Positions 3 to 55,200 of a stretch of DNA of 64,000 nucleotides are shown piece after piece (the first letter of the stretch is position 1; every line of letters begins with the position of its first letter). The notes below the pieces were generated by a model. It searched no databases. It saw nothing but the letters and a program-made list of their open reading frames with translations, and was not told the DNA's origin. The DNA comes from Oculina patagonica. Its lineage: Eukaryota. The DNA lies in the NCBI RefSeq assembly GCF_052425735.1, contig NC_135763.1, positions 3,348,001 to 3,412,000 on the forward strand. The letters are read 5' to 3'. Position numbers and translations under genes: made by a program.

Positions 3-1920
3 AACGATTTACAGAGCGCGAATGAACGGTATGAAAAGGCGTCTCGATCAAACACACGAGCTAAAGTCTTTGAGGAGGAACTGCAAAGAGCACGTGAAGC
101 GAATGATGAAAGAGTTCAACAACTTCAGACTGAAATTGAAGTTCTTCAGGACGCTTTATCTAAAGCGACAGCGCAAGACACTTCAGGCGGAAAACCCAGC
201 CGTAGGAGGCGACTTGATCTAGAAAAACGACCTAGTGACGATTTAAGTAGCGTGATTCAACCTCTCAAGGATAATCTAGAAAAGAAGGAGTTAGAATTGG
301 AGGATTTGAGGCAGACATGCAATCGATTGCAGCGTGAGAGAGAGCAGATGCTTGCTTTGGAGGGGCACAGAGTGGATCGGCACACCAGCCCCAAACCAGA
401 CATGCGAGTGGAAGAATTAACACAAGAAAATAAGCGCCTTAAAGAGCAGGTCTCTCAGCTGTCACTCGATATGGATCAACAGCGGGTTCGGTTCCAGGCT
501 TCTCTAGCGGAGACCGAACGAAGTGCCCGGCTCTCTCGGGAGGAGGCAGCTGACCAGTTGGCAAGTGTACAGGCTCAACACAAACGCGACGTGGAACAGT
601 TAAAGGCTGGATTTGCTGCTGAGCACGGATCTTCTAAAGTAGCAGAGCTTAAGAGCCAGCTAGCGGGACAGGAGATAGTTATTCAGAGACTTAAGGCTAA
701 GATGGCCGATGTTACTGTTAATGCAGAGGCTATAGCGGCAACTAAGGTAAGGACAAGTGTTTTAGTTGAAGAACCTTCTAGCGCCAGTTTTTTACTCTTT
801 AGAGCGGTTTTCACTTGAGTGTCGAAAGTACTTTGCGTTTGCTTTGGTTTTGCGTTCACTACGCTTGGTGATTGGTTTAAAAATTTCGCGCCACTTTCTC
901 GGCCAATCAGGAGTAAAACCAAAACCAATCGCGACTCGCTCGCGTACGTTTTCCCGCGCTTCGTGCCAACTACATGTATTTGCTTCGAGTTTTGATTGGT
1001 TCCCTAGATTGTCTGTGTCGTTTGTGATTGGTTAGAGTAATTACTTTGGTTTTGGTTTTGGTTTTGGTTTTACGACACTCAAGTGAAAACTGCTCTAAGC
1101 CCCAAAGCTATTCCTAATGATGAAATTAGAATTCGGAGCAAAACTAGTGACCGTAACTGACGTCTGAAGCAGCTGAGGCCAGAATATCGCTTTGTAGGAT
1201 TTTTATTTTTGATGAATCCATTCAATTTCCGGTCATAAGAATCGTTTTACACAGTGGAATCCCCGCTAACTGAGACCTCCCCCAGGAGGACATTCCGTCA
1301 CTGGAGAACACTCCTTAAAACTCTTTCTGGTTCAAACGGTGTCCGCTTGTTATTGGTTTTCGCGGAAATTTTTTGAAATCCTGTTGAAACCCTAATTTTC
1401 CAGGCTTTTTTGCAATTTCTTTAAAAAGAAACACAGAACTGAGAAAAAAATTTTTTACTTCAAAATATATCTTGCTTGTTATAAAATCGTTAATGTAGAT
1501 AAATGTGTTTAAACTATTTTTGGAATTGCTTATTCCAAATCGTTTCCTACTTTATGTTAGGTTCGTGAGGAGTCTCTCCAGCAGCAAGTGAATCAACTTC
1601 AGGCGGATCTAAGACGCGCTAAACAGATATTCACACCAGAAATGAACCACTTCGACTCACTGGAGACTAAAATAACTGCTCTTGAACAAAGACACTCTCA
1701 GAGAGAAGTAGACTTACAAAGGATTATAGAAAAAACGCATCTCACTGCAAAGATTGAGAAAGACGAAACAGAAGCAAGATGGCGGCAAGTCGTTCGACAG
1801 AAAAATCGAGAGATTGATAAATTTCGATGTGAACTGGACGCTATACTTGAGGTGCTAAGTGAACTGAAACGCCAGGGTGTGGTCATACCCTTGCAGAATG
1901 GAGGGGGGTTTGTGCCGTAA
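3..1920 (+). CDS. CEP162: Centrosomal protein of 162 kDa, last two coding exons (5' part outside window)
   Basis: Exons <3-746 (open coiled-coil frame, donor AAG|GTAAGG) and 1561-1920 (acceptor TTAG|, phase 0, TAA). C-terminus FTPEMNHFDSLETKI...WRQVVRQKNREIDKFRCELDAILEVLSELKRQGVVIP resembles the CEP162 C-terminus as recalled. Confidence 0.88.
800..1097. mobile_element. MITE in CEP162 intron
   Basis: TIRs TAGAGCGGTTTTCACTTGAGTGTCG ... CGACACTCAAGTGAAAACTGCTCTA; TA at both ends. Confidence 0.85.
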
Positions 1921-2225
1921 GAAATTCCTCTTTGATTGAAAAATGTCTGCACCCTTTCTTGGTCAAAACGTAAACCAGATTCAAATCTCAAGTCACCTAA
2001 TATGATCCAGTGGGTGACCACCACCTAAACAAAAGCTATTGAACAAACATAAGGTTTTGTTTACTATGCCGTGCAATGTGACTTCATCATCTAAGTCTGT
2101 GGATGAAACCCGAGTTAAGTATAAGTATCGAGCCATTCCTATGACACTAACAAACCATTCCTGTCGTGTACTCTATTTATGGTTCATTATATCGTTATTT
2201 ATTGATATAAAAAAAAATATGCATG

Positions 2226-2480
2226 TAATTGACCACTCCCCGAATGGGGCTTTTCAGGGTCAATGTAAACTAACTCTGAAACAAATATTGTAAATGATCG
2301 AAACATGATTAAGAATCCCAACTGGCAGGAGGCAGACCAGCTGGCTATTTACAAGCGTAGCCGAGGAGTTGAATTCGGGGCTACCGAAAACAACACCAGC
2401 TAGTGGTCAGAACGGGACTTGAACCCGCGACCTCCGGATTTCAAGTCCGGCGCTCTAACCACTCGGCCACGCTGCCTCCC
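2226..2480 (-). mobile_element. tRNA-derived SINE
   Basis: Minus strand starts GGAGGCAGCGTGGCCGAGTGGTTAGAGCG...GGGTTCAAGTCCC (A and B boxes), then core GTAAATAGCCAGCTGGTCTGCCTCCTGCCAGTTGGGATTC and a stem-loop tail. The same core recurs at about 56400-56435. Confidence 0.85.
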
Positions 2481-2659
2481 TTAAATATATAGATATCAGT
2501 TCAGAGTCACTCACTACCATTCGTGTTTCACGGTGTAGAATTTTTGAAGAAATATTTCGAACACGAGAAAGGTGGTTAGCTTAAGTTTGTTTACAGATCG
2601 AACATCAAGAAGAGGGTTGTGTCTAGTTTGAGAATCATCCAACAGTGGCAGCCGACTGG

Positions 2660-2781
2660 CAACCTCGTTCCCAGGGTCTACTTCGCTTTTAAGATGGCGG
2701 CTGGACGCGGAGTGCCAGAGTCTTCTCACGACGAGTCGCCATTTTGAAAACTCGTCTTTGAGAAGACCCTGGGGACGAGGT
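2660..2781. mobile_element. Short MITE, AACCTCGTTCCCAGGGTC family
   Basis: ACCTCGTTCCCAGGGTCT ... AGACCCTGGGGACGAGGT; related ends at about 6900, 7260, 23745 and 28250. Confidence 0.7.
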
Positions 2782-3570
2782 AGCAGCAGTGGAACACCAA
2801 GAAGGGGACATTTAAAAAAGCGATTCCAAAGGTATCGCTTACAGAGTTAAGCGCTGTTGCCTTCAACCTCTCATGAGACAATTTTTCGAATAAATAAAAA
2901 AATAAAATAAATAAATCACTATATTTAAGTGTTAATGCATTTTACACTGAAAATAATTAAACAAATATGAACCCGGGATCAGCGCCCTTACCACTAGGCC
3001 ACGCTGTCCTCGAAGCATGATCGTCGGCACGTGCCAATTTCCATATATAACTCGAGGCGCAGGAAAATAAAGCAAAAGAAATCAAATCGACGTTTATAAG
3101 AGACGAATCAATTATTATTTTTTCCCTTAGCCTCGAAGCCAAGTTGGAATTTTGATTTATCGAAATTAGCCTATTGTCCTTCGCTCACGAGATGACGAAC
3201 CATCAGCGTTAAAGCTATATCTGTCTTGTCTCTTAATGTGAAGTCTAGCAACGTCGGTTTTATAAAACCATTGCGAGAGATCAAATATTACAAATCAAAA
3301 TGGGTTTAGCTGCAACTTGACAGAGTGCCTTATTGCTTCCGCAATAAAGTGAAAGCTTCATACGGCTTAGAGTTAGTGAAAACAAGCTTCGTGCGCTAGG
3401 ATTTCTGGGATGGTTAGATAGGCGGTTTGTTCTGGGCGAAATTTTCTTCCAGAACAAAATGCCAAAGCCAGTGAAATGTGTTTTTTGGCTGCGTTTACAA
3501 CGCTGCAACGTACCTGACCCACGTTATTGGATTCCAAACAATGAAGATCTCAAAGCCTGAATGATAACAG

Positions 3571-3974
3571 TGTGTCTTGTGCCGAATTTGAAGCCATTCC
3601 GACGCCATTTAGCGAAGTTATTCGAAGTCGTTGTCTCCCCTTCTAAAAAGAAGGAAAGGCAGACCACTCCATCGATCGCTGGCCAGAGCTCACTCCACAA
3701 ATCGCTCTCTCCTCAAAAGGAAAAGTCCCGAATCGCAATAAAACCAACAGTTCCATAAAGCCCAATAAATTTCACTCCACGTACGTGTGCTTCGGCGGTC
3801 GAAAGTCTCGTAAAGAACGAGAAATTTTGCTTTAAATTCGCCTATTCGGCTTTCCAGATGTGTTTGTGATCGATGGAGTGGTCTGCCTTTCCTTCTTTTT
3901 AGAAGGGGAGACAACGACTTCGAATAACTTCGCTAAATGGCGTCGGAATGGCTTCGAATTCGGCACAAGACACA
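3571..3974. repeat. Near-perfect inverted repeat, 107-bp arms
   Basis: 3571-3677 is the reverse complement of 3868-3974 with one mismatch; 190-bp spacer. Confidence 0.95.
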
Positions 3975-4573
3975 AGTAAGCGATACATTTGAGGTAGGTA
4001 AACTTTATTTCAAAATAGATAGTTATTTACCCGATTTTAGAGAATCCGTGATTTTCCCATACATTTCTCTATATACACAAGCTGTCGCATACACCACGTA
4101 TGTAGAGTCGGCCGCCCGAAGAGCTCTCAAAAACACATCAAATAGACGACTTTTGAGCTTGGGAAGCCTGTGGTTACTGTAGCAGTCAACAACTTCAAGT
4201 TTCGAATCGAGTAATTCGAGATACAAGGCGAAAAAACAAAGAACTTGTCAATCAATTTATTATTTACAAGACTGTTGGAAGAACAAAGTGTACTATTACT
4301 TGTCTTATGTACTACGCTTCAAGAAACAAACGTTACCATTGCCGCTTGGGATGTCACGCAATGTGAAGGAGCGTGGTGTGACCTTTTGTCACGTCGTTCA
4401 CGACAAATGCCTTTTTTCATGCAAATAAAAACCTAGAATCCTACAAGAACAGCAGTTATTAGACCAAAAACCTTTCCTTACCGCTAGCAAGATAGGATAC
4501 TATTTTCATTAAAAAAAGAAATGTTGCGTGGAGCACGTGAACTGTCTCGCATCGCTTGTTTACACAACCCTTA

Positions 4574-5323
4574 GGGTGCGTTTCTTTGGGAAAATCCAAA
4601 ATTGGATCATTGATCTCAGATCACACGGATACTTTGCTCCCAAAGAAACGAAGAATCCGAAAACGGATTTTTTTGCCATGACAACCCCGTAAACACATTT
4701 CGCACAGAACATAAAATATCAGCACAAATTTATTTTCCGTCGAATGTATCCTAGCTAAAATAATTTAAGCATACAAAATCTTTTACAAAAACCACCCGTC
4801 GAAGTAGATCTTCTTTAGCGTTAAGCACAATGTGGCGAGAAAGCATCTGAGAGCGAAAATGATTGCGAAATGATCAGTGCAAATTTCACTCGTGACAATT
4901 TCAAAAGGATACAACTTCCGTAGGCACACAGTGGCTGTTCTAAAAAACCTGTATCCCGTTTAAAATGATACTACATACCTATCTGAAGCTACCGTTTCCT
5001 TTTATCGTGAAATATTTTTGTATTTTGATCGAAATAACCACCTAAAACTTTCCGTATGACAGTGTTTACAAAGAGCGAACCTGTATTTTCACAGCAAAGA
5101 CCGCTGGGCCAAGGTACTTTTTTCGAATCCTTTCCCAAAGAAACGCACGGATCATGAATCCTAAAAATCCGGATTCAAATATAATCTGATGTATCCACTC
5201 GAAGTGTGGATTCTTCAGATCATTGATCCAAGATTAATCCATTTTCGGATATAGGTAAAGAAACGCAAAATCCGTTTTTGGATCAAGAATCCGGATTTGG
5301 ATTTTTCCCAAAGAAACGCACCC
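4574..5323. mobile_element. PIF/Harbinger-type non-autonomous element
   Basis: TIRs GGGTGCGTTTCTTTGGGAAAA ... TTTTCCCAAAGAAACGCACCC; TTA target duplication on both sides. Confidence 0.85.
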
Positions 5324-6551
5324 TTACTTTTTGTGTAAAGCTTGTGTACACAACTCATCGAAAAACTTATTTTCTTTCAATGAGTTCTTTTTTAACCTTT
5401 TTGGAATAAGAACTTTTCAATAAGCTTTTACAAATAATTTCTTAGTAGCTTGCGTAGAAAGGCGGAGAAATATATTTTTCTGTTTACGAAATATTCACTT
5501 GAAGTCGGTGTTTTGAGAGGCGGCGAAGGACGTTATTTGAACCGACAATTAAATTATTTTGTCGCACGGTTTGGATATATGCATATTCTACGGTTCGATG
5601 TTATTTTTATTCTTTTCATGACAATGTTTTAGTTCAGTTCTGAATTCGACTTCGGTCTTTTGTTAAATATACTACTTGAGAGAAATGGAGCTGGTGAATT
5701 ATATCCCGGAGTCCAAGACAAGTAAAACAACATGATCAGCGAACTTGTTTTGATACAACTCGTTGTGCATTCATTGTGTTTGGCAAAGCTGAAATAAATA
5801 AATAACCAGACATTTGATTCGTTTTAATATGCGAATCAAAAATGCTCAAGCCGCACAGAAAAACAAAAACTGTGGAAAGTGAGTCAAAAGTGTGAAAAAC
5901 AAGAAACGTGACCTATGACCGCAGTTGTTCAGCTCATTAGATATGAAGATTTCAGCCGTCGTGATTGTTATTTCACTTTTCATCTACGCCACCGCTGCCT
6001 TTGAAGTTGTTCCTTGATGTATATTTTCCAGCCACCACACGTTCTTCGAAAGCTGTGTCAAAAAGACTTCTAGATTCAAGAATAAAGTGCGACTTACTCG
6101 ATACTGATCGAACTTCTGGGTTTACTGCCTTGGCTGCCCATCTCACCGAAACTTCGGATCCTCCGATCACTGTCGAAAACTTCCGAAAGCACTAACCCGA
6201 GTTATCACGGAAAGTGACCCCCCAATCGGAAAAAACTGCATGACAACAATGTGTAGACTTTAAAGTCCACACAAAAATGACAAGTTTTCTGGATCTTTTA
6301 TCAATGACGCCATTTTGTACTTGACCGCACCAACCAGAAGCGCTCAGTCACCTAACCGAGGCTTTGAAGTGACTCACCTCAGAAACAAATCATGTGACAA
6401 ATGTTTTGCTTAAAACTTTTAATTATCGAGCTCAATTTTAACATCAGTCCCCAGCCAAAGAAACAAAACACTGGATCGTTGGGACTTTTTCGGCATCGTG
6501 AAAGAAAAACACACGATACAAATAAGACAGTTTTTAGAAGGTCGCGGGAAT

Positions 6552-8389
6552 TTACCATCCCTGACGAGTTTTTCGTTTGTGTTTTTTCTTTGGCTTCGGC
6601 TTCCAAATTGGTTTATCACTGTCATCTTCAGCGACTGATGTCTGAGCAGATGGTTGCATTTCATCTCGTTGTGTAACTCGTCTAGTTCTGCGGACTATCA
6701 AGGGTTTCCTGTTAAACCGGAAAATAATTACTATAAAGATTATAAAGCGACATATAAAGTACTGTTAAGCAAAATTTCTTGATAGCAGTACACGTGGTGG
6801 TGATGGTGGTGGTGGTGGTGGGGGGGGGGACGGGGAGGTTGCCCCACTGTTCTTTCAAGATGGTGGCTGAGGCCCAGCCGCTATATTGAAAGCGAAGAAG
6901 ACCCTGGGGACGAGGATAAAGCTGTTAAGGCTGATTCCGCCTAAAGGAGGGCATGGTATTTTTGGTTAGCTTCCTTTACTATTTATTTACTATAAAGGCA
7001 GCCGCACCGCGCTATGGAAAAACATAATGCGAACTGACGTGTGAAGGACCCAACGGATTGACGGAAGCCGATCCGGATAAAGTCGTCCGGCATTGCACAA
7101 CAAGTCAGCTAACGCAAGGAGTCGGGGGGCGGGGAGGGAAGGGGGAGAGGGGAAGAGGACTCCCATATGAAAGGGATAGAGCTGTTCGTCGGAAAATTCG
7201 AAATAGACCCCTGCGAGTGGCTCAAGGAAAACTTGAGCTGAACCAGTGTTTACAGCTTGAACCTCGTTCCCAGGGTCTTCTCGGCCGCAGCCGCCCCCTC
7301 CCTCCCCCTAAAAAATGGTCCGTCCCTAAAATAAGAAAACGTTTAAAACGACTCTGGTTTAAAATAAGATTTAGATGTTAGGCGTAAGCGGCCGCCGCCG
7401 TGAGAGAGTCTTGAATAAGCTCCCGCAATTCCTGCTCACCTTCTTCGTCGTAAGTAAGCCACACCATGGCGATACAAGCGGTAAATTGAACGAGTGAAAG
7501 CATGGACAGCCAAGGCAAAGATAAACAGGTGAAACAGGTCCAACCAGGTCCAATTCTGCACTCGGTACTTCAGGTTTGTCAGTTGATCTAACAAAATATA
7601 AACGGACAAAGAAACAGGCAAGCATGAAATTAGACTACTGGTAGTCTGCCTTTTCTTTAAGGTCTCTTAGGGTCGGAGCGCGCGGTTATATCAGAAACGA
7701 CATCAGGAACGCGAGCAAACTGGTTGAACTGGCGGGTGGATGAGAAGGGGTTTGGGGCGAGACGAGTTTTTCCTCCATCGCGCGCGCACACTTGTCTCGC
7801 CCCAATCCTTCCTCGCGCGTCTTAAACCCTCCCTAGCCTCGCACTCCCTTACTAAACTTCGAGATAAAAACAGACTGCAAGCAGTGCAAGCATTCTAGCA
7901 TGAAATTATCAGGAAATACAGTGGCGTTTTCTATTTAACGGTTCCCGGTTGCTCAAAGCACGATTAAACTAATATAGGATTAGCATGAATTTTGATTTCA
8001 GTTATAACTTTTCAGTAGTGATTGTCTTTTAGTTTTTATTTTAGCAAAATGTTTAAATTGCACTTAACATTTCTAGTAAAAATTACTTTTATTACACTGT
8101 GGAAAAATTAAAACCTCGGTTAACTTTTTATCCCGGCTTAGCCTTAATTAATCGAGTTTCCGAGTTTCGAACAACTTCGTCATGTACAATATGCCTTGCA
8201 AACTGGTTCGCAAAATGATTGAGGCAGACAGACAGACAGACAGACAGTGTCTTTTAGGTATTTAAATATATATTCTAATTCCAAACTCATCTCTGCGCAC
8301 TATTGTTAGGTTTAAGTTTTAAATATAATTTACACAGTTCACTTACTTTCCATAAATTTGTAATAACCGTTGAAGGTTAATCCTGACAT
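6552..8389 (-). CDS. Predicted 115-aa single-pass membrane protein, 3 coding exons, no family recognised
   Basis: Exons 8389-8347, 7587-7440 and 6708-6552 have GT-AG sites (GTAAGT, GTGAGC donors) and matching phases (1, 2). They give MSGLTFNGYYKFMENQLTNLKYRVQNWTWLDLFHLFIFALAVHAFTRSIYRLYRHGVAYLRRRRKPLIVRRTRRVTQRDEMQPSAQTSVAEDDSDKPIWKPKPKKKHKRKTRQGW*. Confidence 0.7.
7631..7897. mobile_element. Academ-like MITE (TAG...CTA ends, 9-bp TSD)
   Basis: Flanked by GCATGAAAT on both sides; subterminal AGTCTG / CAGACT inverted repeats. Confidence 0.7.
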
Positions 8390-9827
8390 TATGAAACTAC
8401 CATTCGAATATGAAAGAACAAGCTCACTGTACTCTCTTTAATTCCAACTTTAAATCCTGAAGTTTCATCTCCCAGACAGATCGAGCCTATCATTTAAAAT
8501 GAAAAACAAATCTAATAAGTAAAAAACTCGCAACAGACTTTCAACCTACATAGCCCACACGATATGGGACTTCGTACGTACCTGTCCACAGATTCGCGTG
8601 GTAAGATCCGCAAACCGTTCACTTCATTCAACGTATTGAGGAAGGCTTGAATTAGAAGCTGTCAGCACAATACACCAAAGGTAATTATCCTCCTCTTCAA
8701 ACAAACTTTGACGTTACAATGGCTTTTTAACCATGAGCTCGCGCTGTGACGTTCTCGCCGACGCTTTGTTTTACGCGCGCGCGGGTTTGTTTTCCTTTTT
8801 TTCTGAACTCTCTGACAGTCCTCAGTTCGGGGAGTGCTGAGCTACAATGGGCAGCAAAAGTAGTTGAGACAGTTGGCTGAAATGAGTTCTAATTCCAATA
8901 AATTAATTATTTCCACTTCAAATCCGGTGTAATGAGGACTGCACACAATGGAATATCACTGAGCGTGTATAGCCACAACACGCGTCATCATTATAATTAA
9001 GAACGTTAAGGGAACACAAATTATTTATTATACATCGTATCATTGTCACATAACATATCATCTCGATAATGTGGTTTGTACGAATAAACCATAAATATAG
9101 CTTAAGCGATGGTTATTCCCTAATTTTAACTACGCTTTCCAAGTTTTTTTTAATGCGGTTACATTTATTGAAAAATGTTTCAGCCATTAAGGAATGGCTT
9201 TTTGCTGTTTAGTCAATAAAACGTTATTTTGTCCTTAACCCTGAACACGAATTAAATTACTGACAACGCTACTCTCTTTATATTATTATCATCGATTGCC
9301 TTTTTGTTGCGTTGCATCGCAAATTCTTATTTTATTTGATCCCGTGCAAAATGCCGATTATTCACAGCCGTTACACTCGTTTCGTAACCTGGAGATCGTG
9401 GCGGATTCTAGGAGGGCTTTCGTTTCAATTCGCACCGTACCGTAACTGAAGCGTCGTCCTCTGGGTTGGTATAAAAAACTCTCAGAGCCAAGTCAAGTTT
9501 CGATCTGTGTTATCTCGTGCTACACAGACAAAATCAGCGCTAAAAAAGGGCCTTTCTTTGCTTTCTTTTTTAATCAATTCATGTAGTTTGTATCACGAAC
9601 AGACAGAATCGAAGGGCTTATTTTTGCGTCGAAAGCCCGTTTGTAAAATTATACACATATTTTCACTAGCTATACGAGTCAGGCAAAACTACGGAAAAGC
9701 AAATATTACGAGCACTCTGGTTGAAAAGAAAAGTCAAATTATCTCAGGTACGTAACGTTTTTAATCTCGTGTGGACTTTCAAGTGAGTGCTTATTGATTT
9801 TTTATAAAAGTTTACCGAACCTTGACG

Positions 9828-45300: not shown

Positions 45301-48300
45301 ACCAACAATCTTTACAAGATTAGGTTGACCATTTCCAGCAAGGTTCTTGCTGCTTACACACCTGCCACCCAAGATTAACAAAACTAGTTTAGTTGTCTTG
45401 GCATGGTAAGTAACTAGTTACCTCATTACCTAGATATCATATCGGCACTGTGCATGTTAAACAATATGGCCTCCATCTTGGATTACTGCATTTTATGGGT
45501 GAAACTTGTTTTTAGTAGGTCTTGTGGAGTAAAATGAAATATTAAATAGATTTAGCCAAGCCTGAAAGCGGAGCTCCCCGGTTATTTACTTCGCCCTTTT
45601 CGAAAATCCGAATTTACTGACTGAAAACAGGAAAAAATATAGCACTTGAGCCCGTGATCCAATGTAAACCATTACTTGGTCAGCGGTAAACTTCAAAAAA
45701 ACATTCGACCTCAATGAGTTCTAAATGTGAGCCCGCGATATGGTCATGTGGTACTGGTCAGTGGATACCTTGTTTTGACAGCTGTCAATTGACCATGAAA
45801 TGGATGTCCAATATCAAAGATGTAAGCTGACATCAACCATAACGGTAAACCTTAAACCTATTTCTGGAGTATGGCCTCCATGTTGGGGCGACGTCTTCGC
45901 ATGTGCCCACGAACCATACCGCTAGCCATGATGACCATGAAAAACCAAAAGCATAGGTCTGTTAATCTATGGGTATGGGGCTCTGCTCTGTGGCCCTTTG
46001 GGCTGCTGGGAGCTCTGCTAAAATGGAAGTACTTTCAGCTGTGTTATTAGCAGATTGTCATATTTTGTGGTAACCACACATAAAAACATGTATGGGGATA
46101 CCAAATACAGTTGTTGTTGCAAAAGACTGTATACAGCAGCCACTAAGCATGGACTAGAGGTTTACAAACATTCTAAATAAAGCATAAACCTACTCTTGAT
46201 GTGGTGAAACTGAAGAAAACCTGACAACAGCAAGCACTTGTGATGGGAACAACAAATCTGGTATCCAGGACAGGGTATGAATGATAACATAGCAGACCTG
46301 TGAATTTCATTTGGGGGAACAAAAATTAACAGTTATTTATTGTTCATTTCACAGGGTTCCCACAATGTATGGGTACATGTATAAAGCAGCTGACAGAAAA
46401 TTCAAATTGATTTCATGTTTTTGAACAATCCAAAAATTCTTCCAAATTTCACAGGTTAAATCAGGATTTTTGTTGGAATAACAGAAATGGAAAAAAGCAA
46501 AATGATATTTTTGGGCTGATGATTTTGCTGCTAATAACATTTTCATTGACAAAGTTAATGTTACTCTCAGGCTATCTTGGCATGCTCACACAATTTCTGG
46601 CTAGTAATCATTTTATACTAAAACATTTCCTGTGATTAAATGTGTTCACAGGAAAGAAGCACAGCCCAGCCAAACAAGAAACAAGAAATTACAAAAGTTC
46701 AAACTCTGAACATAATAATTTTATATTGTTGGTCTACAAAAATATACTCCTTCAATTACCTCTTGAAACACATTGATGGCATTCAAAGGCTCAGTTATTA
46801 CCAGATTTCCAAGTGCAGCTGCAAAAAAATGGTGCAGATGCAAACCATTCTTTATTTGGTTTAGCAGGAAATGGGAGAAGTGACCATACAGTCAAATAAT
46901 ACATCTTTTCAAACTTAGTGACTCTTAGAATAATTCTAAGAGTCTCATGACTAACAGGCATACCATTAAAATCTAGCAAATGCATCAGGTCCATTTCAAG
47001 AACAAATCTGTAAACAGTCTTTTCCTGAGTAAAAACAAGAAACGTGTAATGTCAGAATTTATTGTCTGAAAATTGCTATATATATATCTGTCTGGACTTG
47101 CAAGATAAGGTGCCCCAAGTAACTCAAGGGCTCTGCAAGTCCCTTGACCTCCCCCCACCCCCACTGAATAGAGACTAACACATCATGAGCCAATGTGAAA
47201 CCTGCCACTCCAGCAGGGTGCCTTTCCAACAGAGAACCCTCAAGCAATGGCCATCAGCTGGGCACACTGTCCAGACAGGCAGTCAAAAATAACACACTTG
47301 AATATGCACTCAAAACAACTCAAGACTTTAAGTCTATCAGTCAAAAGGAACACCCTGCTTTTGACAGCTAGTCACAAGCCAAGCACCAGCGAATAGCCCA
47401 GTCCCCCAGTGGGCCACGACACCAGACTAGCCATGACGTTGACCCACCTCAAGTTAAAGCTGCCAGCTCTAGAGGCTCAAATTTGGGCTTCACCTGAGTC
47501 CTGTCACTTATTTTTCCTTCTCTTTTTTTGCCTGCGCAACAACAAAACTACTGGCTATACAGGCTAACAATGACATAGTCTTGCATTTTTTTAAATTTGT
47601 TTGTGCTATTGCAGTGTTAATGCTCTGCAGCCCTAGTGTCCCCCTCCTATTTTCACATATGGATAAATGCTAGTTCTGCAAGGCTTTGCAAGATGTCCAA
47701 TAACTCCTTTTGAGCAGAGCCCAAGTCTAATAGACCTTGTCATGGTTTTCGATGCCATCTGTTGATAGTTGTGATGCATGCGAGAGAGTTTACCTCTCTG
47801 ATGATTAACATTTGTTTGAAATATGCTGTATTACATACATATTTTGTAGTGGTCTATAACATCTGGTCTGATGAGCATGCGTCTCGACAGTCAACAGAAG
47901 CAATTCACAGTCCAAGAGGCCTGGGAGCAAATGTCTTGTGATCAATGTTTCCTTTATAGCAAATATTTGACTCACTCCACTGTGGTTGCCTTGGTAGCTC
48001 AGTGGTTAGAGCACCATTCATGAGATCGGAGTGTCGTGGGTTTGAATCCCGCTCGGGGCATCTGGTTTTTTTCCCGGCATTTGTTCTGTTCAATATATAG
48101 ATAGGCATATCAGAGTTTACCTCTCTAATGATGAACATTTGTTCAAAATATGCTGTATTACGTACGCAAAAGTTTTTATTCACCAAGTTTGAAGCGTTCA
48201 GTTATGTTTTTAATTTTTCATACATTTTTCCTGCAAACCATGTCAAAAAAATACAATCCTTTCCTTAGTATCTTTACTTTATGATTCATAAGTTGTTCAG

Positions 48301-48833
48301 AATTTTTTTTTTAATATTTGCCATTGGATTCCCATACAAACACTGTAAATTCTGACAGCGTTGCCTGCATGTCGAAAACAGTGACAAGGTCTACATAATA
48401 TAGCGAACTACCGGTATGTCATATGTTAGGATTAAATCATAAGTAACAAGGACTTCCTAACCATATATTTGTCGAATAATTGCAGCTACGTACCGGTATG
48501 TCAAAATTCTAGATTTTGATTGGTTCTTTACATGCCTCACATCAGCACGAGAGGGTGTGGGTGTCCAATTACAACTTTTTTGTAATTAAATGACTCAATT
48601 TAGTAATTGGACCTCAATCACCCAATTACTCTCGTTTGTAGTCAACTTAAATGTACTCCAGTTGCTGTTACTGCCCAATATAAAACTGCAAACTTTGTAT
48701 ACATCAGTACATCACCTCGAACACTTACCGCAAAATCTGCTGTATAGCATTCACATTGCTTTTTGAGCTGGTCAAAAGCTCCACATTCACACAGCCATTC
48801 GAATGCTACTTCTGAGATACTCTTTGTCTCCAT
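38667..48833 (-). CDS. MCMDC2: MCM domain-containing protein 2, 18 exons traced, terminal exon(s) unresolved
   Basis: Exons 48833-48729, 47024-46890, 46297-46194, 45361-45266, 44714-44610, 44243-44176, 43968-43864, 43624-43515, 43065-43048, 42815-42746, 41906-41853, 41491-41225, 40589-40500, 40012-39840, 39728-39697, 39538-39391, 39066-38921, 38712-38667, all phase-compatible. Motifs YTQSARFYC, YIRVHLAGKTE, TPPGTFFQLK, GYYLASRRTR and AHAKLALR match MCMDC2 as recalled. Confidence 0.9.
41985..42370 (+). mobile_element. 5'-truncated CR1/L2-type LINE fragment inserted into a hairpin repeat (41935-42680)
   Basis: YDLRG...KPRTTSFGLSSFSY...WNTLP...FK, the typical LINE ORF2 C-terminus; (TATG)n tail at 42342-42370. 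Confidence 0.75.
47785..48165 (+). ncRNA. Retrozyme-like unit: two decayed type III hammerhead ribozymes 327 nt apart
   Basis: Direct repeats 47785-47837 and 48112-48165. Their consensus is GCATATC^AGAG-TTTAC-CTCT-CTGATGA-T-GAAC-ATTT-GTTC-GAAA-TATGC, with all three stems pairing. Confidence 0.75.
47988..48060 (+). pseudogene. tRNA-like cloverleaf (not a functional tRNA)
   Basis: Acceptor GCCTTGG/TCGGGGC, D arm GCTC/GAGC, T arm GTGGG-TTTGAAT-CCCGC; anticodon stem does not pair; T7 run at 48066-48072. Confidence 0.7.
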
Positions 48834-52200: not shown

Positions 52201-55200
52201 TACCAATTGTTCTAACAAGAAGTTTGTTTCTTTTCAGGCTAACAAATGAAGAATCAAGAAAAAATTGGGAAGAGCATGGTAATCCTGATGGACCTGGAGG
52301 TATGCATTCACAGTACAAATGTAGAATAAAACCTCTTCTAATATCATCCTTTTGGTTTTAATATTAAGGAAAACATATTTCTAACTATAATAATAATATT
52401 TGTGCATGAAAATCCTGAGCTTAACAATATAGCAAGAATTATTCTGATTCAAGGTGGACTATATTAAAAAAATTGATACGAAATGTGGATACTGTTAATC
52501 AAAGTTCCCCTGGGGGCTTATTTTGTCTCCATAAATTGTCTTAAGTAGCTTTTCACGGAGCTTAGGGTTATTTGTAAAATAAAATAGAGTACTAAACAAT
52601 GAATGAGCTTGGAAGAGAGGAAGTGGGGCGAAATATTGAATTTGATTTACCGGTATAAGTGATTAAAGCGCATGCTTTTAAAGTACTGTTTTAATCTGCA
52701 ACTTTATTTTTTGATCTTTCAGCAACCAGCTTTGGAATAGCTTTGCCTTCCTGGCTTGTGAGCAAAGAAAACTCCATGTGGGTTAGTTGATTCTAAAAAC
52801 CATCATAATAATTTATTTTCTAATCATCACCAGCCTTATTATAAATGGTGTTCATTAGCCAGCTTAAAATTTTTGGATCAATTTAGGTTTCTGGGAAACT
52901 GCTCACCTACCCCTCCCCAAACCCAACATTAACCTTTACTTATCGCTTTGGGCAAAATGTTAGGTTTAGGGAGGGGTAGGTGAGCAGTTTCCCAGAAACC
53001 TAAATTGATCCAAATTTTTTTCATACTTTCAACTTTTTTATTCAGAATTCTGCGTCATCATTTATTGCTTGTCTGGTCTTTATACTAGGTACTGGGAGCT
53101 TATGGACTTGCCTTTATGGTGATTCTTCCAATTGCAGTGGTAAGCAAACATATTATAATGTGAATCATATAATATATTATGCAATATAACCAATTAGTGT
53201 GTCTGCTTGCTGGATACTAGAATGATAATTTTTATTCATTTTTTTTTGTTTAGGGAACCTGGTGGTACAAGTCTATTCAGTACAGCTGTGAACAGATCTT
53301 ACTGGATACCACTCAACTGTATTACTACTTCTTTCACAAGACACCAGCTATGCAGTCTAAACGTATGTACAGTAGTCAATAACGAAGAACATTCGGTTTG
53401 ACTGTAATTGATTTTGACCAAATAGCGCTGTGTGCACTTGAATTTTTTTGAATGAATAATAATAATCTTTATTTCAATAACATGGTACATTACACTAATA
53501 CATCACAATATTTCATACAAAATTTGCTACTTAAATTACACTTGATGATTTTAACATTGCTGATCCTAGCAGTATGCAGGACGCGTGTCACATATCAACC
53601 TAGTAAATGGCCCAGCTCACCACGAGTCTCTCGTAGCTCAGTTGGTTAGAGCACCCAATCGGTATTCTGGGAGGCCATGGGTTCGATTCCTGTCGGGAAC
53701 TCAGAATTTTTCTTTGTCCCATGCTCGTGTCATTGTTGAAAAGTTAATCTTCATCTTCAGTCACTTACTGTTGGTATAGTAAAGGGCAGTTTAGACCATG
53801 ACCATGTTTGATGGTCCAATGTCCATGCATGGGCACGTAAAGAGAAGAAATCTACAACATTGAAAAATGTAAACCAACTGTAATATTAATACTTCTGTTT
53901 TTATAGGTGTGTTAATGATTTTGGCTGGTTCCTTGGAGTTTGAAAAAGGTCACAATAATGAAGTTCAGGAGCGACCAAGTGATAACATAGAATTACCAGA
54001 GGTAAGGCCTGTGCAACATTGTAGCATAAAGACTAGGCCAGGGATTAAAATGCAATAAAGGAACTTTTTTTTAGTGATGTTGCAGTGTTTGTTAACTTTC
54101 TATTGATTCTTTGTTGTGTTTAGTTAATGCGAGACTTGCCCAACCTTGGTGATAAAAACAAAGAGCCGCCCCTGTGCTACCCTTACAGTATCAAGGCAAG
54201 AGCTCTGATTCATGGTCACTTGTCACGGCTAGAGCTTCCTAGACTCACACTCAAATCAGGTGAGGCTCCATGGGTTACACAGGGTTCATATTGTGAGGGA
54301 AAAGAGTCTGATTCAGAACATGTATAAACTGACACATTGGTCGATGTTTCAATTGGAAGTTGGTCCGCTGTTTGCGCAGTTGGTTTAAGCTCTCCATCAC
54401 TTTTACAAAAGGTTTCCATAACTAATAACACTTAAGAAACAAGTACATATTAATTAAAAAGAAAATTTATACTGATTTTCATTCAAATTTGTCTAGAGTT
54501 ATGGTTACAGTCAAACCAGATATTCTTTTGATGGGAACTTTGCAATGTTGCAGCGCAATGTTCCAATGTTGTTTAACAGTTTGCTTGTTACAACTTGCAA
54601 CTGAAATGAAAACCAGAACTTGGCAACTTGATCAAGCAAATTTGAAATGAAAGTTGCAAGTTGCGACAAGCAAACTGTCCATCAATATTGGAGCATTGCA
54701 CCACAACATTGCAGAGTTACCATCAAAAAAACATTCTGTTTGACTGTAATTGATTCTGACCAACCAGTGCTGTGTGCAAAGACTCTATCAACAATAAATT
54801 TTAATAAAACTGATAAAAAAAAGATGAGAAAACTATTTTTTAGATCGCACTTTTTTGAATTTTAAGGTTAGGGAGTGCAGTCTTATACATGCATTTTTCA
54901 TTTGCCATATTCTAGACCTTGATCTGATACTGCAGAAGAGTCCATTCCTTATCCAAGAAATGGTTAGCTGTGTGGGACAGCTTATTGCCATGGCCAAAGC
55001 AGGGCGAAGTAAGTAAAAACTTAAAAACCATTTAGTTTCTAGATCAATATTTAAGAGTTCTTTTGCTGACATACATGAATGTAAATATTACTAACAATCA
55101 TCAGGATTATAAATTTACATTAACCTTACTTTTTTTCTGGCATACACTAATAATAATAATTTATTATTATATCAGTCATACAACCGTCAGACCACTAATG

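Follow-up and report, generated by a model that had tools for sequence, protein, structure and literature searches.

A dispersed coral retroposon that carries a tRNA-like cassette and a type III hammerhead motif

A stretch of 64,000 nucleotides (nt) of the Oculina patagonica genome (contig NC_135763.1; hereafter the window, whose positions serve as coordinates) contains a short element at 47785-48165. We consider it probable that this element is one dead copy of a low-copy, dispersed, non-autonomous coral retroposon which carries a tRNA-like cassette and a type III hammerhead ribozyme (HHR), resembles the schistosome element Sm-alpha, and is mobilised by Penelope-like elements (PLEs). The family of the window copy, which has a 327-nt unit, is named family A. 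The original prediction, made from the window sequence, had described the element as an inactive copy of a type III, tRNA-containing retrozyme, the monomers of which are bounded by tandem hammerheads. Its type III topology, the tRNA-like module, retroposition, and the inactivity of the window copy were borne out. The array of monomers bounded by tandem hammerheads was not.

The window copy is 381 bp long and comprises one 327-nt unit plus 54 nt. Direct repeats of about 50 bp had been predicted 327 nt apart, and indeed 47785-47838 and 48112-48165 are 54-nt repeats with 91% identity and this spacing. The first repeat (plus strand, like all parts of the element described here) is the 5' terminal redundancy, which corresponds to unit positions 1-54 and was delimited by sequence reading, repeat comparison, and a family pile-up. 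It contains a helix I hairpin (AGAG/CTCT, loop TTTAC), CTGATGA at 47798-47804, an extra T, helix II, GAAA at 47818-47821, the 3' strand of helix III, and a tail. Its helix II is damaged (TAAC/GTTT), the pair G10.1-C11.1 being changed to U.U. Because it has neither a cleavage triplet nor the 5' strand of helix III, the first repeat is unable to fold as a ribozyme. The sole complete hammerhead motif of the window copy, of type III and mutated, is located at 48104-48154. It begins with GGCATATC (48104-48111), with predicted cleavage after C48111, followed by helix I (AGAG/CTCT, loop TTTAC; 48112-48124), the core CTAATGA (48125-48131; G5 replaced by A), an extra T at 48132, helix II (GAAC/GTTC, loop ATTT; 48133-48144), and AAAA (48145-48148) at the place where GAAA is expected (G12 replaced by A). 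Helix III is formed by GGCATAT/ATATGCT. The core pieces of both repeats, including the mutated second core, had been correctly located in the original prediction.

The repeats enclose 149 nt of non-coding body (47839-47987), the predicted tRNA-like module (47988-48060; Rfam tRNA, 41 bits), and a run of seven T (T7) directly 3' of the module (48066-48072). Downstream of the hammerhead motif, the family 3' tail (48155-48165) ends with ACGTAC, one of two canonical 3' termini of the family. The only complete ribozyme of the window copy has lost G5 and G12 since insertion, and the copy is a dead, decayed insert without likely function. Two other readings of its sequence were rejected. A possible second hammerhead at 47868 (CTGATGAG) is not a ribozyme, because the family majority has CCGATGAG at this place; no GAAA is present in register. 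When the motif was read as type I, with the tail providing helices III and I, the pairing failed and a G would occupy position 17.

The family as a whole retains an intact motif. A search of the 529-Mb genome with the 381-nt window copy yielded at least 62 matches. The core pattern matched exactly at 12 genome positions and within three mismatches at 36 (0 for the reversed control), showing that family A is small; it has some tens to perhaps 150 copies. All pattern and BLAST matches to family A were family copies. A pile-up of 30 loci yielded the majority motif, which consists of GGCATATC upstream of the cleavage site and AGAG-TT(T/G)AC-CTCT-CTGATGA-T-GAAC-ATTT-GTTC-GAAA-TATGCC downstream of it, then GTATTACGTAC. 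As RNA, it reads GGCAUAUC before and AGAG-UUKAC-CUCU-CUGAUGA-U-GAAC-AUUU-GUUC-GAAA-UAUGCC after the cleavage site. As predicted for the family consensus, the CUGAUGA/GAAA core is intact, all three helices are present, and an extra U follows A9.

In the unit, the non-coding body is followed by the tRNA-like cassette (A and B boxes, T7) and, ~45 nt on, by the hammerhead motif; the predicted cleavage site lies 51 nt past the tRNA-like module. Thus, within a unit of ~300 nt, a tRNA-like, promoter-type module is located upstream of a hammerhead, which is the Sm-alpha arrangement. The A box is canonical (TAGCTCAGTGG), the anticodon arm aberrant; the B box reads GGTTTGAATCC in the window copy and GGTTCGAATCC in the majority. 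Family A copies scored 37-49 bits with the Rfam tRNA model. ARAGORN called 19 of 27 other copies 'tRNA-Leu(gag)' (75 nt) and rejected the module of the window copy. The T7 run resembles a terminator of RNA polymerase III (Pol III) and is conserved in family A and in a sister family, family B, which is described below.

A generic descriptor of type III hammerheads (minimum helix length 4 bp, extra nucleotide optional) was matched once in 20 Mb of Markov-1 random sequence, corresponding to a false-positive rate of ~5e-8 per nt. In ~0.5 Mb of fetched loci it was matched 16 times, always at a motif of family A or the sister family. This shows that the motif is not a product of chance. According to the descriptor, helix I has 4 bp and a 5-nt loop, helix II has 4 bp and a 4-nt loop, and helix III has 7 bp and is open. 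The minimum-energy fold is a three-way junction. A type III core with a UH triplet is present in the family majority and in the 12 exact genome copies. Sequence variation was analyzed in 44 family A pieces that were found without the motif (loci found by BLAST only), since a version with all loci is biased by the motif search. Non-majority bases amounted to 13.9% in the ribozyme loops, 6.1% in the stems, 5.1% in the core, 4.4% in the tRNA-like part, and 7.4% in the body; for stems and core versus body, the difference was not significant in these pieces (p = 0.14). We regard it as probable that the family-majority motif is catalytic.

Family A is a dispersed, non-autonomous retroposon that is spread by target-primed reverse transcription. 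The majority of copies are single inserts with truncated 5' ends. Target-site duplications of 8-14 bp flank simple copies (L004, L011, L020, L021, L022, and L027), and family A copies have no A-tail. The 5' ends of ten copies are at unit positions 1-31, and the rest are scattered over positions 60-205. In near-full-length copies, including the window copy, the outermost 5' ends reach unit position 1, which fits a template 5' end that was cut by the upstream ribozyme of a partial tandem. Rather than coinciding with the cleavage site, the 3' ends are located within the ribozyme or past it: for ~20 pieces the last position is 347-359 (helix II loop), and for ~25 it is 377-381, at ACGTAC, 27 nt further on. 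Single 3' ends were found at 328 (L015; 1 nt past the cleavage site) and at 336 (L023). Examples of ends inside the helix II loop are L004, L006, L013, L019, and L026, and also the end at 302 in locus L062 of family B; ends in loop 1 are rarer. At ~14 loci, a second, 5'-truncated copy is present in inverted orientation directly upstream, so that both 3' ends face outward. In many such head-to-head pairs the axis falls within the hairpin of helix II or helix I. Full copies typically possess a single complete HHR and a terminal redundancy of 27-54 nt. The predicted layout, in which repeats enclose the tRNA-like module, was found in other copies as well (L002, L003, and L007-L010 as well as L014-L016); such copies are 1.0-1.2 units long. 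No copy with two full units is present among 60 loci (maximum ~1.2 units), and this is why monomers bounded by tandem hammerheads, as initially proposed, do not describe the family.

Characteristically, PLE insertions are strongly truncated at the 5' end, form partial tandems, lie next to an inverted copy that is 5'-truncated, and terminate in an extension of tens of bp (PMC8557442). All these features are found in family A. In addition, its HHR carries a hallmark of PLE hammerheads, the extra nucleotide between A9 and G10.1. The genome is rich in GIY-YIG endonuclease domains (150 matches among 860 candidates), and many of these stand in head-to-head pairs. Locus L064 (G000:C8:10950800-10957800) harbors at 1177-5297 a very young PLE with an open reading frame (ORF) of 860 amino acids (aa) encoding RVT_1 and GIY-YIG domains. 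An inverted copy with 5' truncation directly adjoins it; the arms, of 1271 nt, show 100% identity, and both contain a minimal type I hammerhead in which A9 is followed by an extra A. L064 and the GIY-YIG counts together indicate that PLEs are abundant and young and that they build the same architecture. It is likely, on these grounds, that PLEs supply the reverse transcriptase and the endonuclease in trans. Family A thus resembles the PLEs with minimal hammerheads (PMC4209133; PMC8557442) in its 5' truncation, partial tandems, inverted 5'-truncated partner, and terminal tail, and its head-to-head layout is that of L064. It differs from them in that PLE hammerheads are of type I with a minimal helix III and are located in the pseudo-LTRs (LTR, long terminal repeat) of a coding element. 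Moreover, family A and the examined PLE have no sequence in common, and that PLE, unlike family A, ends 45 nt past its ribozyme.

The same design was found in family B. This sister family has a 268-nt unit, which is present in 2.5 tandem copies with 98% identity on the minus strand of locus L062 (G000:C6:10275900-10277300; 302-1007). In each unit, a tRNA-like module (54 bits) and a T7 run, which is enclosed in a 7-bp hairpin, accompany an intact type III hammerhead. The motif is located 35 nt past the module and reads ACAGUGUC before the cleavage site and UCAU..AUGA-CUGAGGA-U-GAUUCUA-AAC-UAGAAUC-GAAA-CACUGU after it, with a GUC triplet, a 4-bp helix I, and a 7-bp helix III. Families A and B have in common the core, C17, the extra U, and G10.1-C11.1. 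In family B, ~10 stem pairs are changed on both sides compared to family A; these changes were read from the descriptor output, and MAFFT misaligned the ribozyme helices. The two families are alignable solely in the tRNA-like part (71% over 79 nt). The family B array terminates inside helix II, and an inverted 42-nt partner at one end stops in loop 1. Two families that have unrelated stems and the same design argue against chance. From the sequence comparison, the ribozyme and its coupling to the tRNA-like cassette would seem to be selected features.

Family A is expressed as element-limited RNA. In the RNA-Seq run X10, a coral metatranscriptome, contigs matching copy L002 spanned its unit positions 28-320 (depth 83) and 291-379 (depth 164), and nothing was found on either flank of the element in this run. 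DNA carry-over cannot account for this depth, because the whole run has 306 Mb, which is less than one genome equivalent. The contigs pass through the T7 run. No back-joint was present in X10, the one RNA run, which provides contigs only and thus cannot show circularity. Back-joints of about one unit were detected in a DNA-type run, where they match partial tandems of the kind seen in the window copy.

In the mechanism that we propose for a PLE-mobilised, Sm-alpha-like retroposon, the source loci would be those with a partial upstream copy. There, the hammerhead would remove the upstream transcript and set the 5' end of the template at unit position 1. RNAs whose 3' ribozyme stays uncut or is re-ligated would be those that are reverse transcribed, primed either in the helix II loop or at the ACGTAC tail. 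The AUC triplet and a shifted helix I register are expected to slow co-transcriptional cleavage, and slow cleavage could help the 3' ribozyme to remain uncut.

Several observations weigh against this explanation. Helix I has only 4 bp and adopts a shifted register in the minimum-energy fold, in which C17 and bases of the core are paired. Natural hammerheads seldom use an AUC triplet, with which co-transcriptional cleavage is slower (PMC1636495). No Rfam hammerhead model reported the motif at E values up to 10 in the window, in eight good copies, in a 76-nt stretch, or in family B. Hammerhead_3, with which the original prediction was to be checked, likewise gave no score. The likely reasons for the silence of Rfam are the extra nucleotide and the 4-bp helix I; a whole-genome search with RF00008 scored only 68 of about 80,000 candidates and is uninformative on hammerhead membership. 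In the variation analysis, the sole standout was the contrast of loops to stems and core, which tallies copies and not independent events. The T7 run between promoter and ribozyme should stop Pol III before the ribozyme is reached. The X10 contigs cross the predicted cleavage site, and they show neither RNA ends nor the strand. The 3' termini inside the ribozyme speak against a simple transfer of the Sm-alpha model to family A. No autonomous PLE with the family A 3' end was found, the 3' end having been compared for L064 alone and a further locus, L065, having been merely scanned for the HHR core. Finally, identity between the repeats of the window copy was predicted to start exactly at the cleavage site. 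This holds to within 2 nt (junction GCGAG/AGAG), the 5' junction being ambiguous by two bases, but the window copy is the only one of ~10 near-full-length copies that begins there, and three copies run through the site.

Some of the data would also suit a classic retrozyme, in which tandem hammerheads free a 327-nt monomer, tRNA ligase circularises it, and the circle serves as the template for reverse transcription, so that copies are permuted read-outs of slightly more than one unit. Copies of 1.0-1.2 units indeed occur in differing phases (284 to 328 in L015, 305 to 381 in L016, 28 to 381 in L002, and 31 to 353 in L006), one 3' end is located 1 nt past the cleavage site (L015), and family B forms an array of 2.5 units with 98% identity. 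Furthermore, type I retrozymes of corals produce circular RNA (PMC7229834), and the back-joints of the DNA-type run span about one unit. These back-joints, however, are accounted for by partial tandems, and the RNA run has none. Family A has no array of at least two full units among the 60 loci, and its ends are at fixed positions inside the ribozyme instead of in random phases. We therefore consider a classic retrozyme unlikely. A still lower probability is assigned to a hammerhead-derived three-way junction that is no longer catalytic and serves the reverse transcriptase as a 3' recognition and priming structure. Such a structure would account for the position of the 3' ends of families A and B in its helix II or helix I loops, and it would agree with the short helix I, the missing Rfam score, and the poor in vitro cleavage by PLE minimal hammerheads (PMC4209133). 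Yet all catalytic positions (C3-A9, G12-A14, C17, and G10.1-C11.1) are kept in two families without common stem sequence, which would be needless for pure binding.

We also considered an ordinary tRNA-derived short interspersed nuclear element (SINE) with a 3' tail that is borrowed from a partner long interspersed nuclear element (LINE) by which it is mobilised. The candidate partner is located on another chromosome, in L061 (G000:C4:35991000-36000999), where an intact ORF of 1178 aa for a PHD-APE-RT LINE (242-3778) is followed by the motif 800 nt downstream; a DDE_Tnp_4 transposase ORF is present at 6145-6885. This candidate was rejected. The 611-nt stretch at this place has no other occurrence in the genome, and the motif in it belongs to a 5'-truncated family A copy among other repeats. 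The combination was found at L061 alone, where it was doubled through a 4.7-kb duplication: a repeat of at least 600 nt that includes the truncated copy is present at 4055-4653 and 8794-9391 (92-96% identity, 4738 bp apart). In addition, the tRNA-like part of family A is not at the 5' end, copies extending up to 175 nt upstream of it, and head-to-head inverted copies are frequent. A LINE-mobilised SINE is thus highly improbable. Local tandem duplication combined with a chance likeness to a hammerhead has a negligible probability in our assessment. The defects of both motifs in the window and the silence of Rfam would agree with it, but a genome-wide family with an intact majority motif, a second family of the same design, and the low false-positive rate of the descriptor do not.

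The closest known counterparts of the proposed PLE-dependent retroposon are Sm-alpha and Sj-alpha of schistosomes (PMC6765202; PMC2770079). In the Sm-alpha model, multimeric transcripts are trimmed by a hammerhead located after a tRNA-like Pol III promoter; as cleavage leaves the promoter in the 3' part of the unit, a single copy is unable to propagate (PMC6765202; PMC2770079). As in family A, the unit is non-coding and has ~330 nt, the tRNA-like promoter precedes the hammerhead, and partial tandems matter, with the promoter in the 3' part after cleavage; Sm-alpha copies are taken for tRNA pseudogenes by tRNA finders. Sm-alpha, however, has a type I HHR and a very high copy number in flatworms, whereas family A has a type III motif, T7 between promoter and ribozyme, tens of copies, and common head-to-head inserts. 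Animal non-LTR retrozymes, including those of Acropora millepora (PMC7229834; bioRxiv 10.64898/2026.07.22.740005), are likewise small, non-coding, low-GC hammerhead retroelements of cnidarians; they have target-site duplications of more than 4 bp, are expressed, and are proposed to depend on PLEs. They differ in their type I HHR, tandem units of 220-245 bp, circular RNA, and lack of a tRNA-like module. Family A is dispersed, with type III motifs that cannot be read as type I and with no more than ~1.2 units per copy; an array of at least two units, characteristic of these retrozymes, is reached by family B only (2.5 units). Helix II with 4 bp and a 4-nt loop is shared with the type III hammerheads of plant LTR retrozymes, of viroids and satellites, and with atypical type III hammerheads of insects and delta-like agents (PMC4918200; PMC7936874). 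Unlike the LTR retrozymes of plants, family A has no LTRs, primer-binding site, polypurine tract, or 4-bp target-site duplications. In contrast to plant, viroid, and insect type III hammerheads, its helix I has 4 bp instead of ~6 bp and an AUC triplet is present; neither the extended helix I nor the pseudoknot of insect and delta-like type III hammerheads is found in it. Type III hammerheads are already on record from animal genomes (PMC7936874), as are type I retrozymes from corals (PMC7229834). Family A is apparently an undescribed coral family, in which known parts (a promoter and ribozyme like those of Sm-alpha, PLE-like insertion, and retrozyme-like size) are combined in a type III topology.

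The window copy is located in a foldback or MITE-like repeat (MITE, miniature inverted-repeat transposable element), which has long inverted arms and for which the genome contains several hundred candidate copies. The left remnant of this host repeat is at 47729-47784 and the right part at 48166-48393 (no strand assigned); in its terminal inverted repeat, 48372-48393 pairs with 47731-47752. A comparison to its paralogues shows that the window copy was inserted into this repeat with loss of ~105 nt of target at the junction. A target-site duplication of the window copy was looked for and not found. Downstream of the element, 53905-54003 (plus strand) is an apparent coding exon ending in a GT donor. 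The original prediction placed the copy antisense in intron 1 of MCMDC2. The Pfam MCM model had no match inside the window, which decides nothing on this putative gene context. Further tRNA-like matches, at 2404-2476 (minus strand) and 53629-53698 (plus strand), belong to other tRNA-derived SINE families. The latter family is the one in locus L063, where partial copies adjoin each other. The tRNA-headed repeat of L063 was tried as a relative of family A and rejected, as it is a different SINE family without a type III motif. Elsewhere in the genome, at L017 (~1742-2425), a family A copy is split by an insertion of ~680 nt that is flanked by a 15-nt duplication of element sequence.

At present, the definition of animal hammerhead retroelements rests on tandem arrays with type I ribozymes, and type III is treated as a plant and viroid form. 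A type III HHR together with a tRNA-like cassette and Penelope-style insertion would widen this definition and would link the Sm-alpha design of schistosomes to cnidarians. We suggest, tentatively and as the less probable outcome, that corals hold a distinct superfamily of ribozyme retroelements, with at least two families, in which a tRNA-like Pol III cassette is located just upstream of a Penelope-type hammerhead re-wired to type III and inserts end in hairpin loops. If so, the reverse transcriptase would prime within the ribozyme, perhaps on circular or multimeric RNA. This would make it possible to study directly how retrozymes are copied by Penelope-type enzymes and for what reason a hammerhead, with its tRNA-ligase-type ends, is found together with tRNA mimicry. 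The precise insert ends in the ribozyme loops would provide an entry to the copying mechanism of Penelope-type reverse transcriptases.

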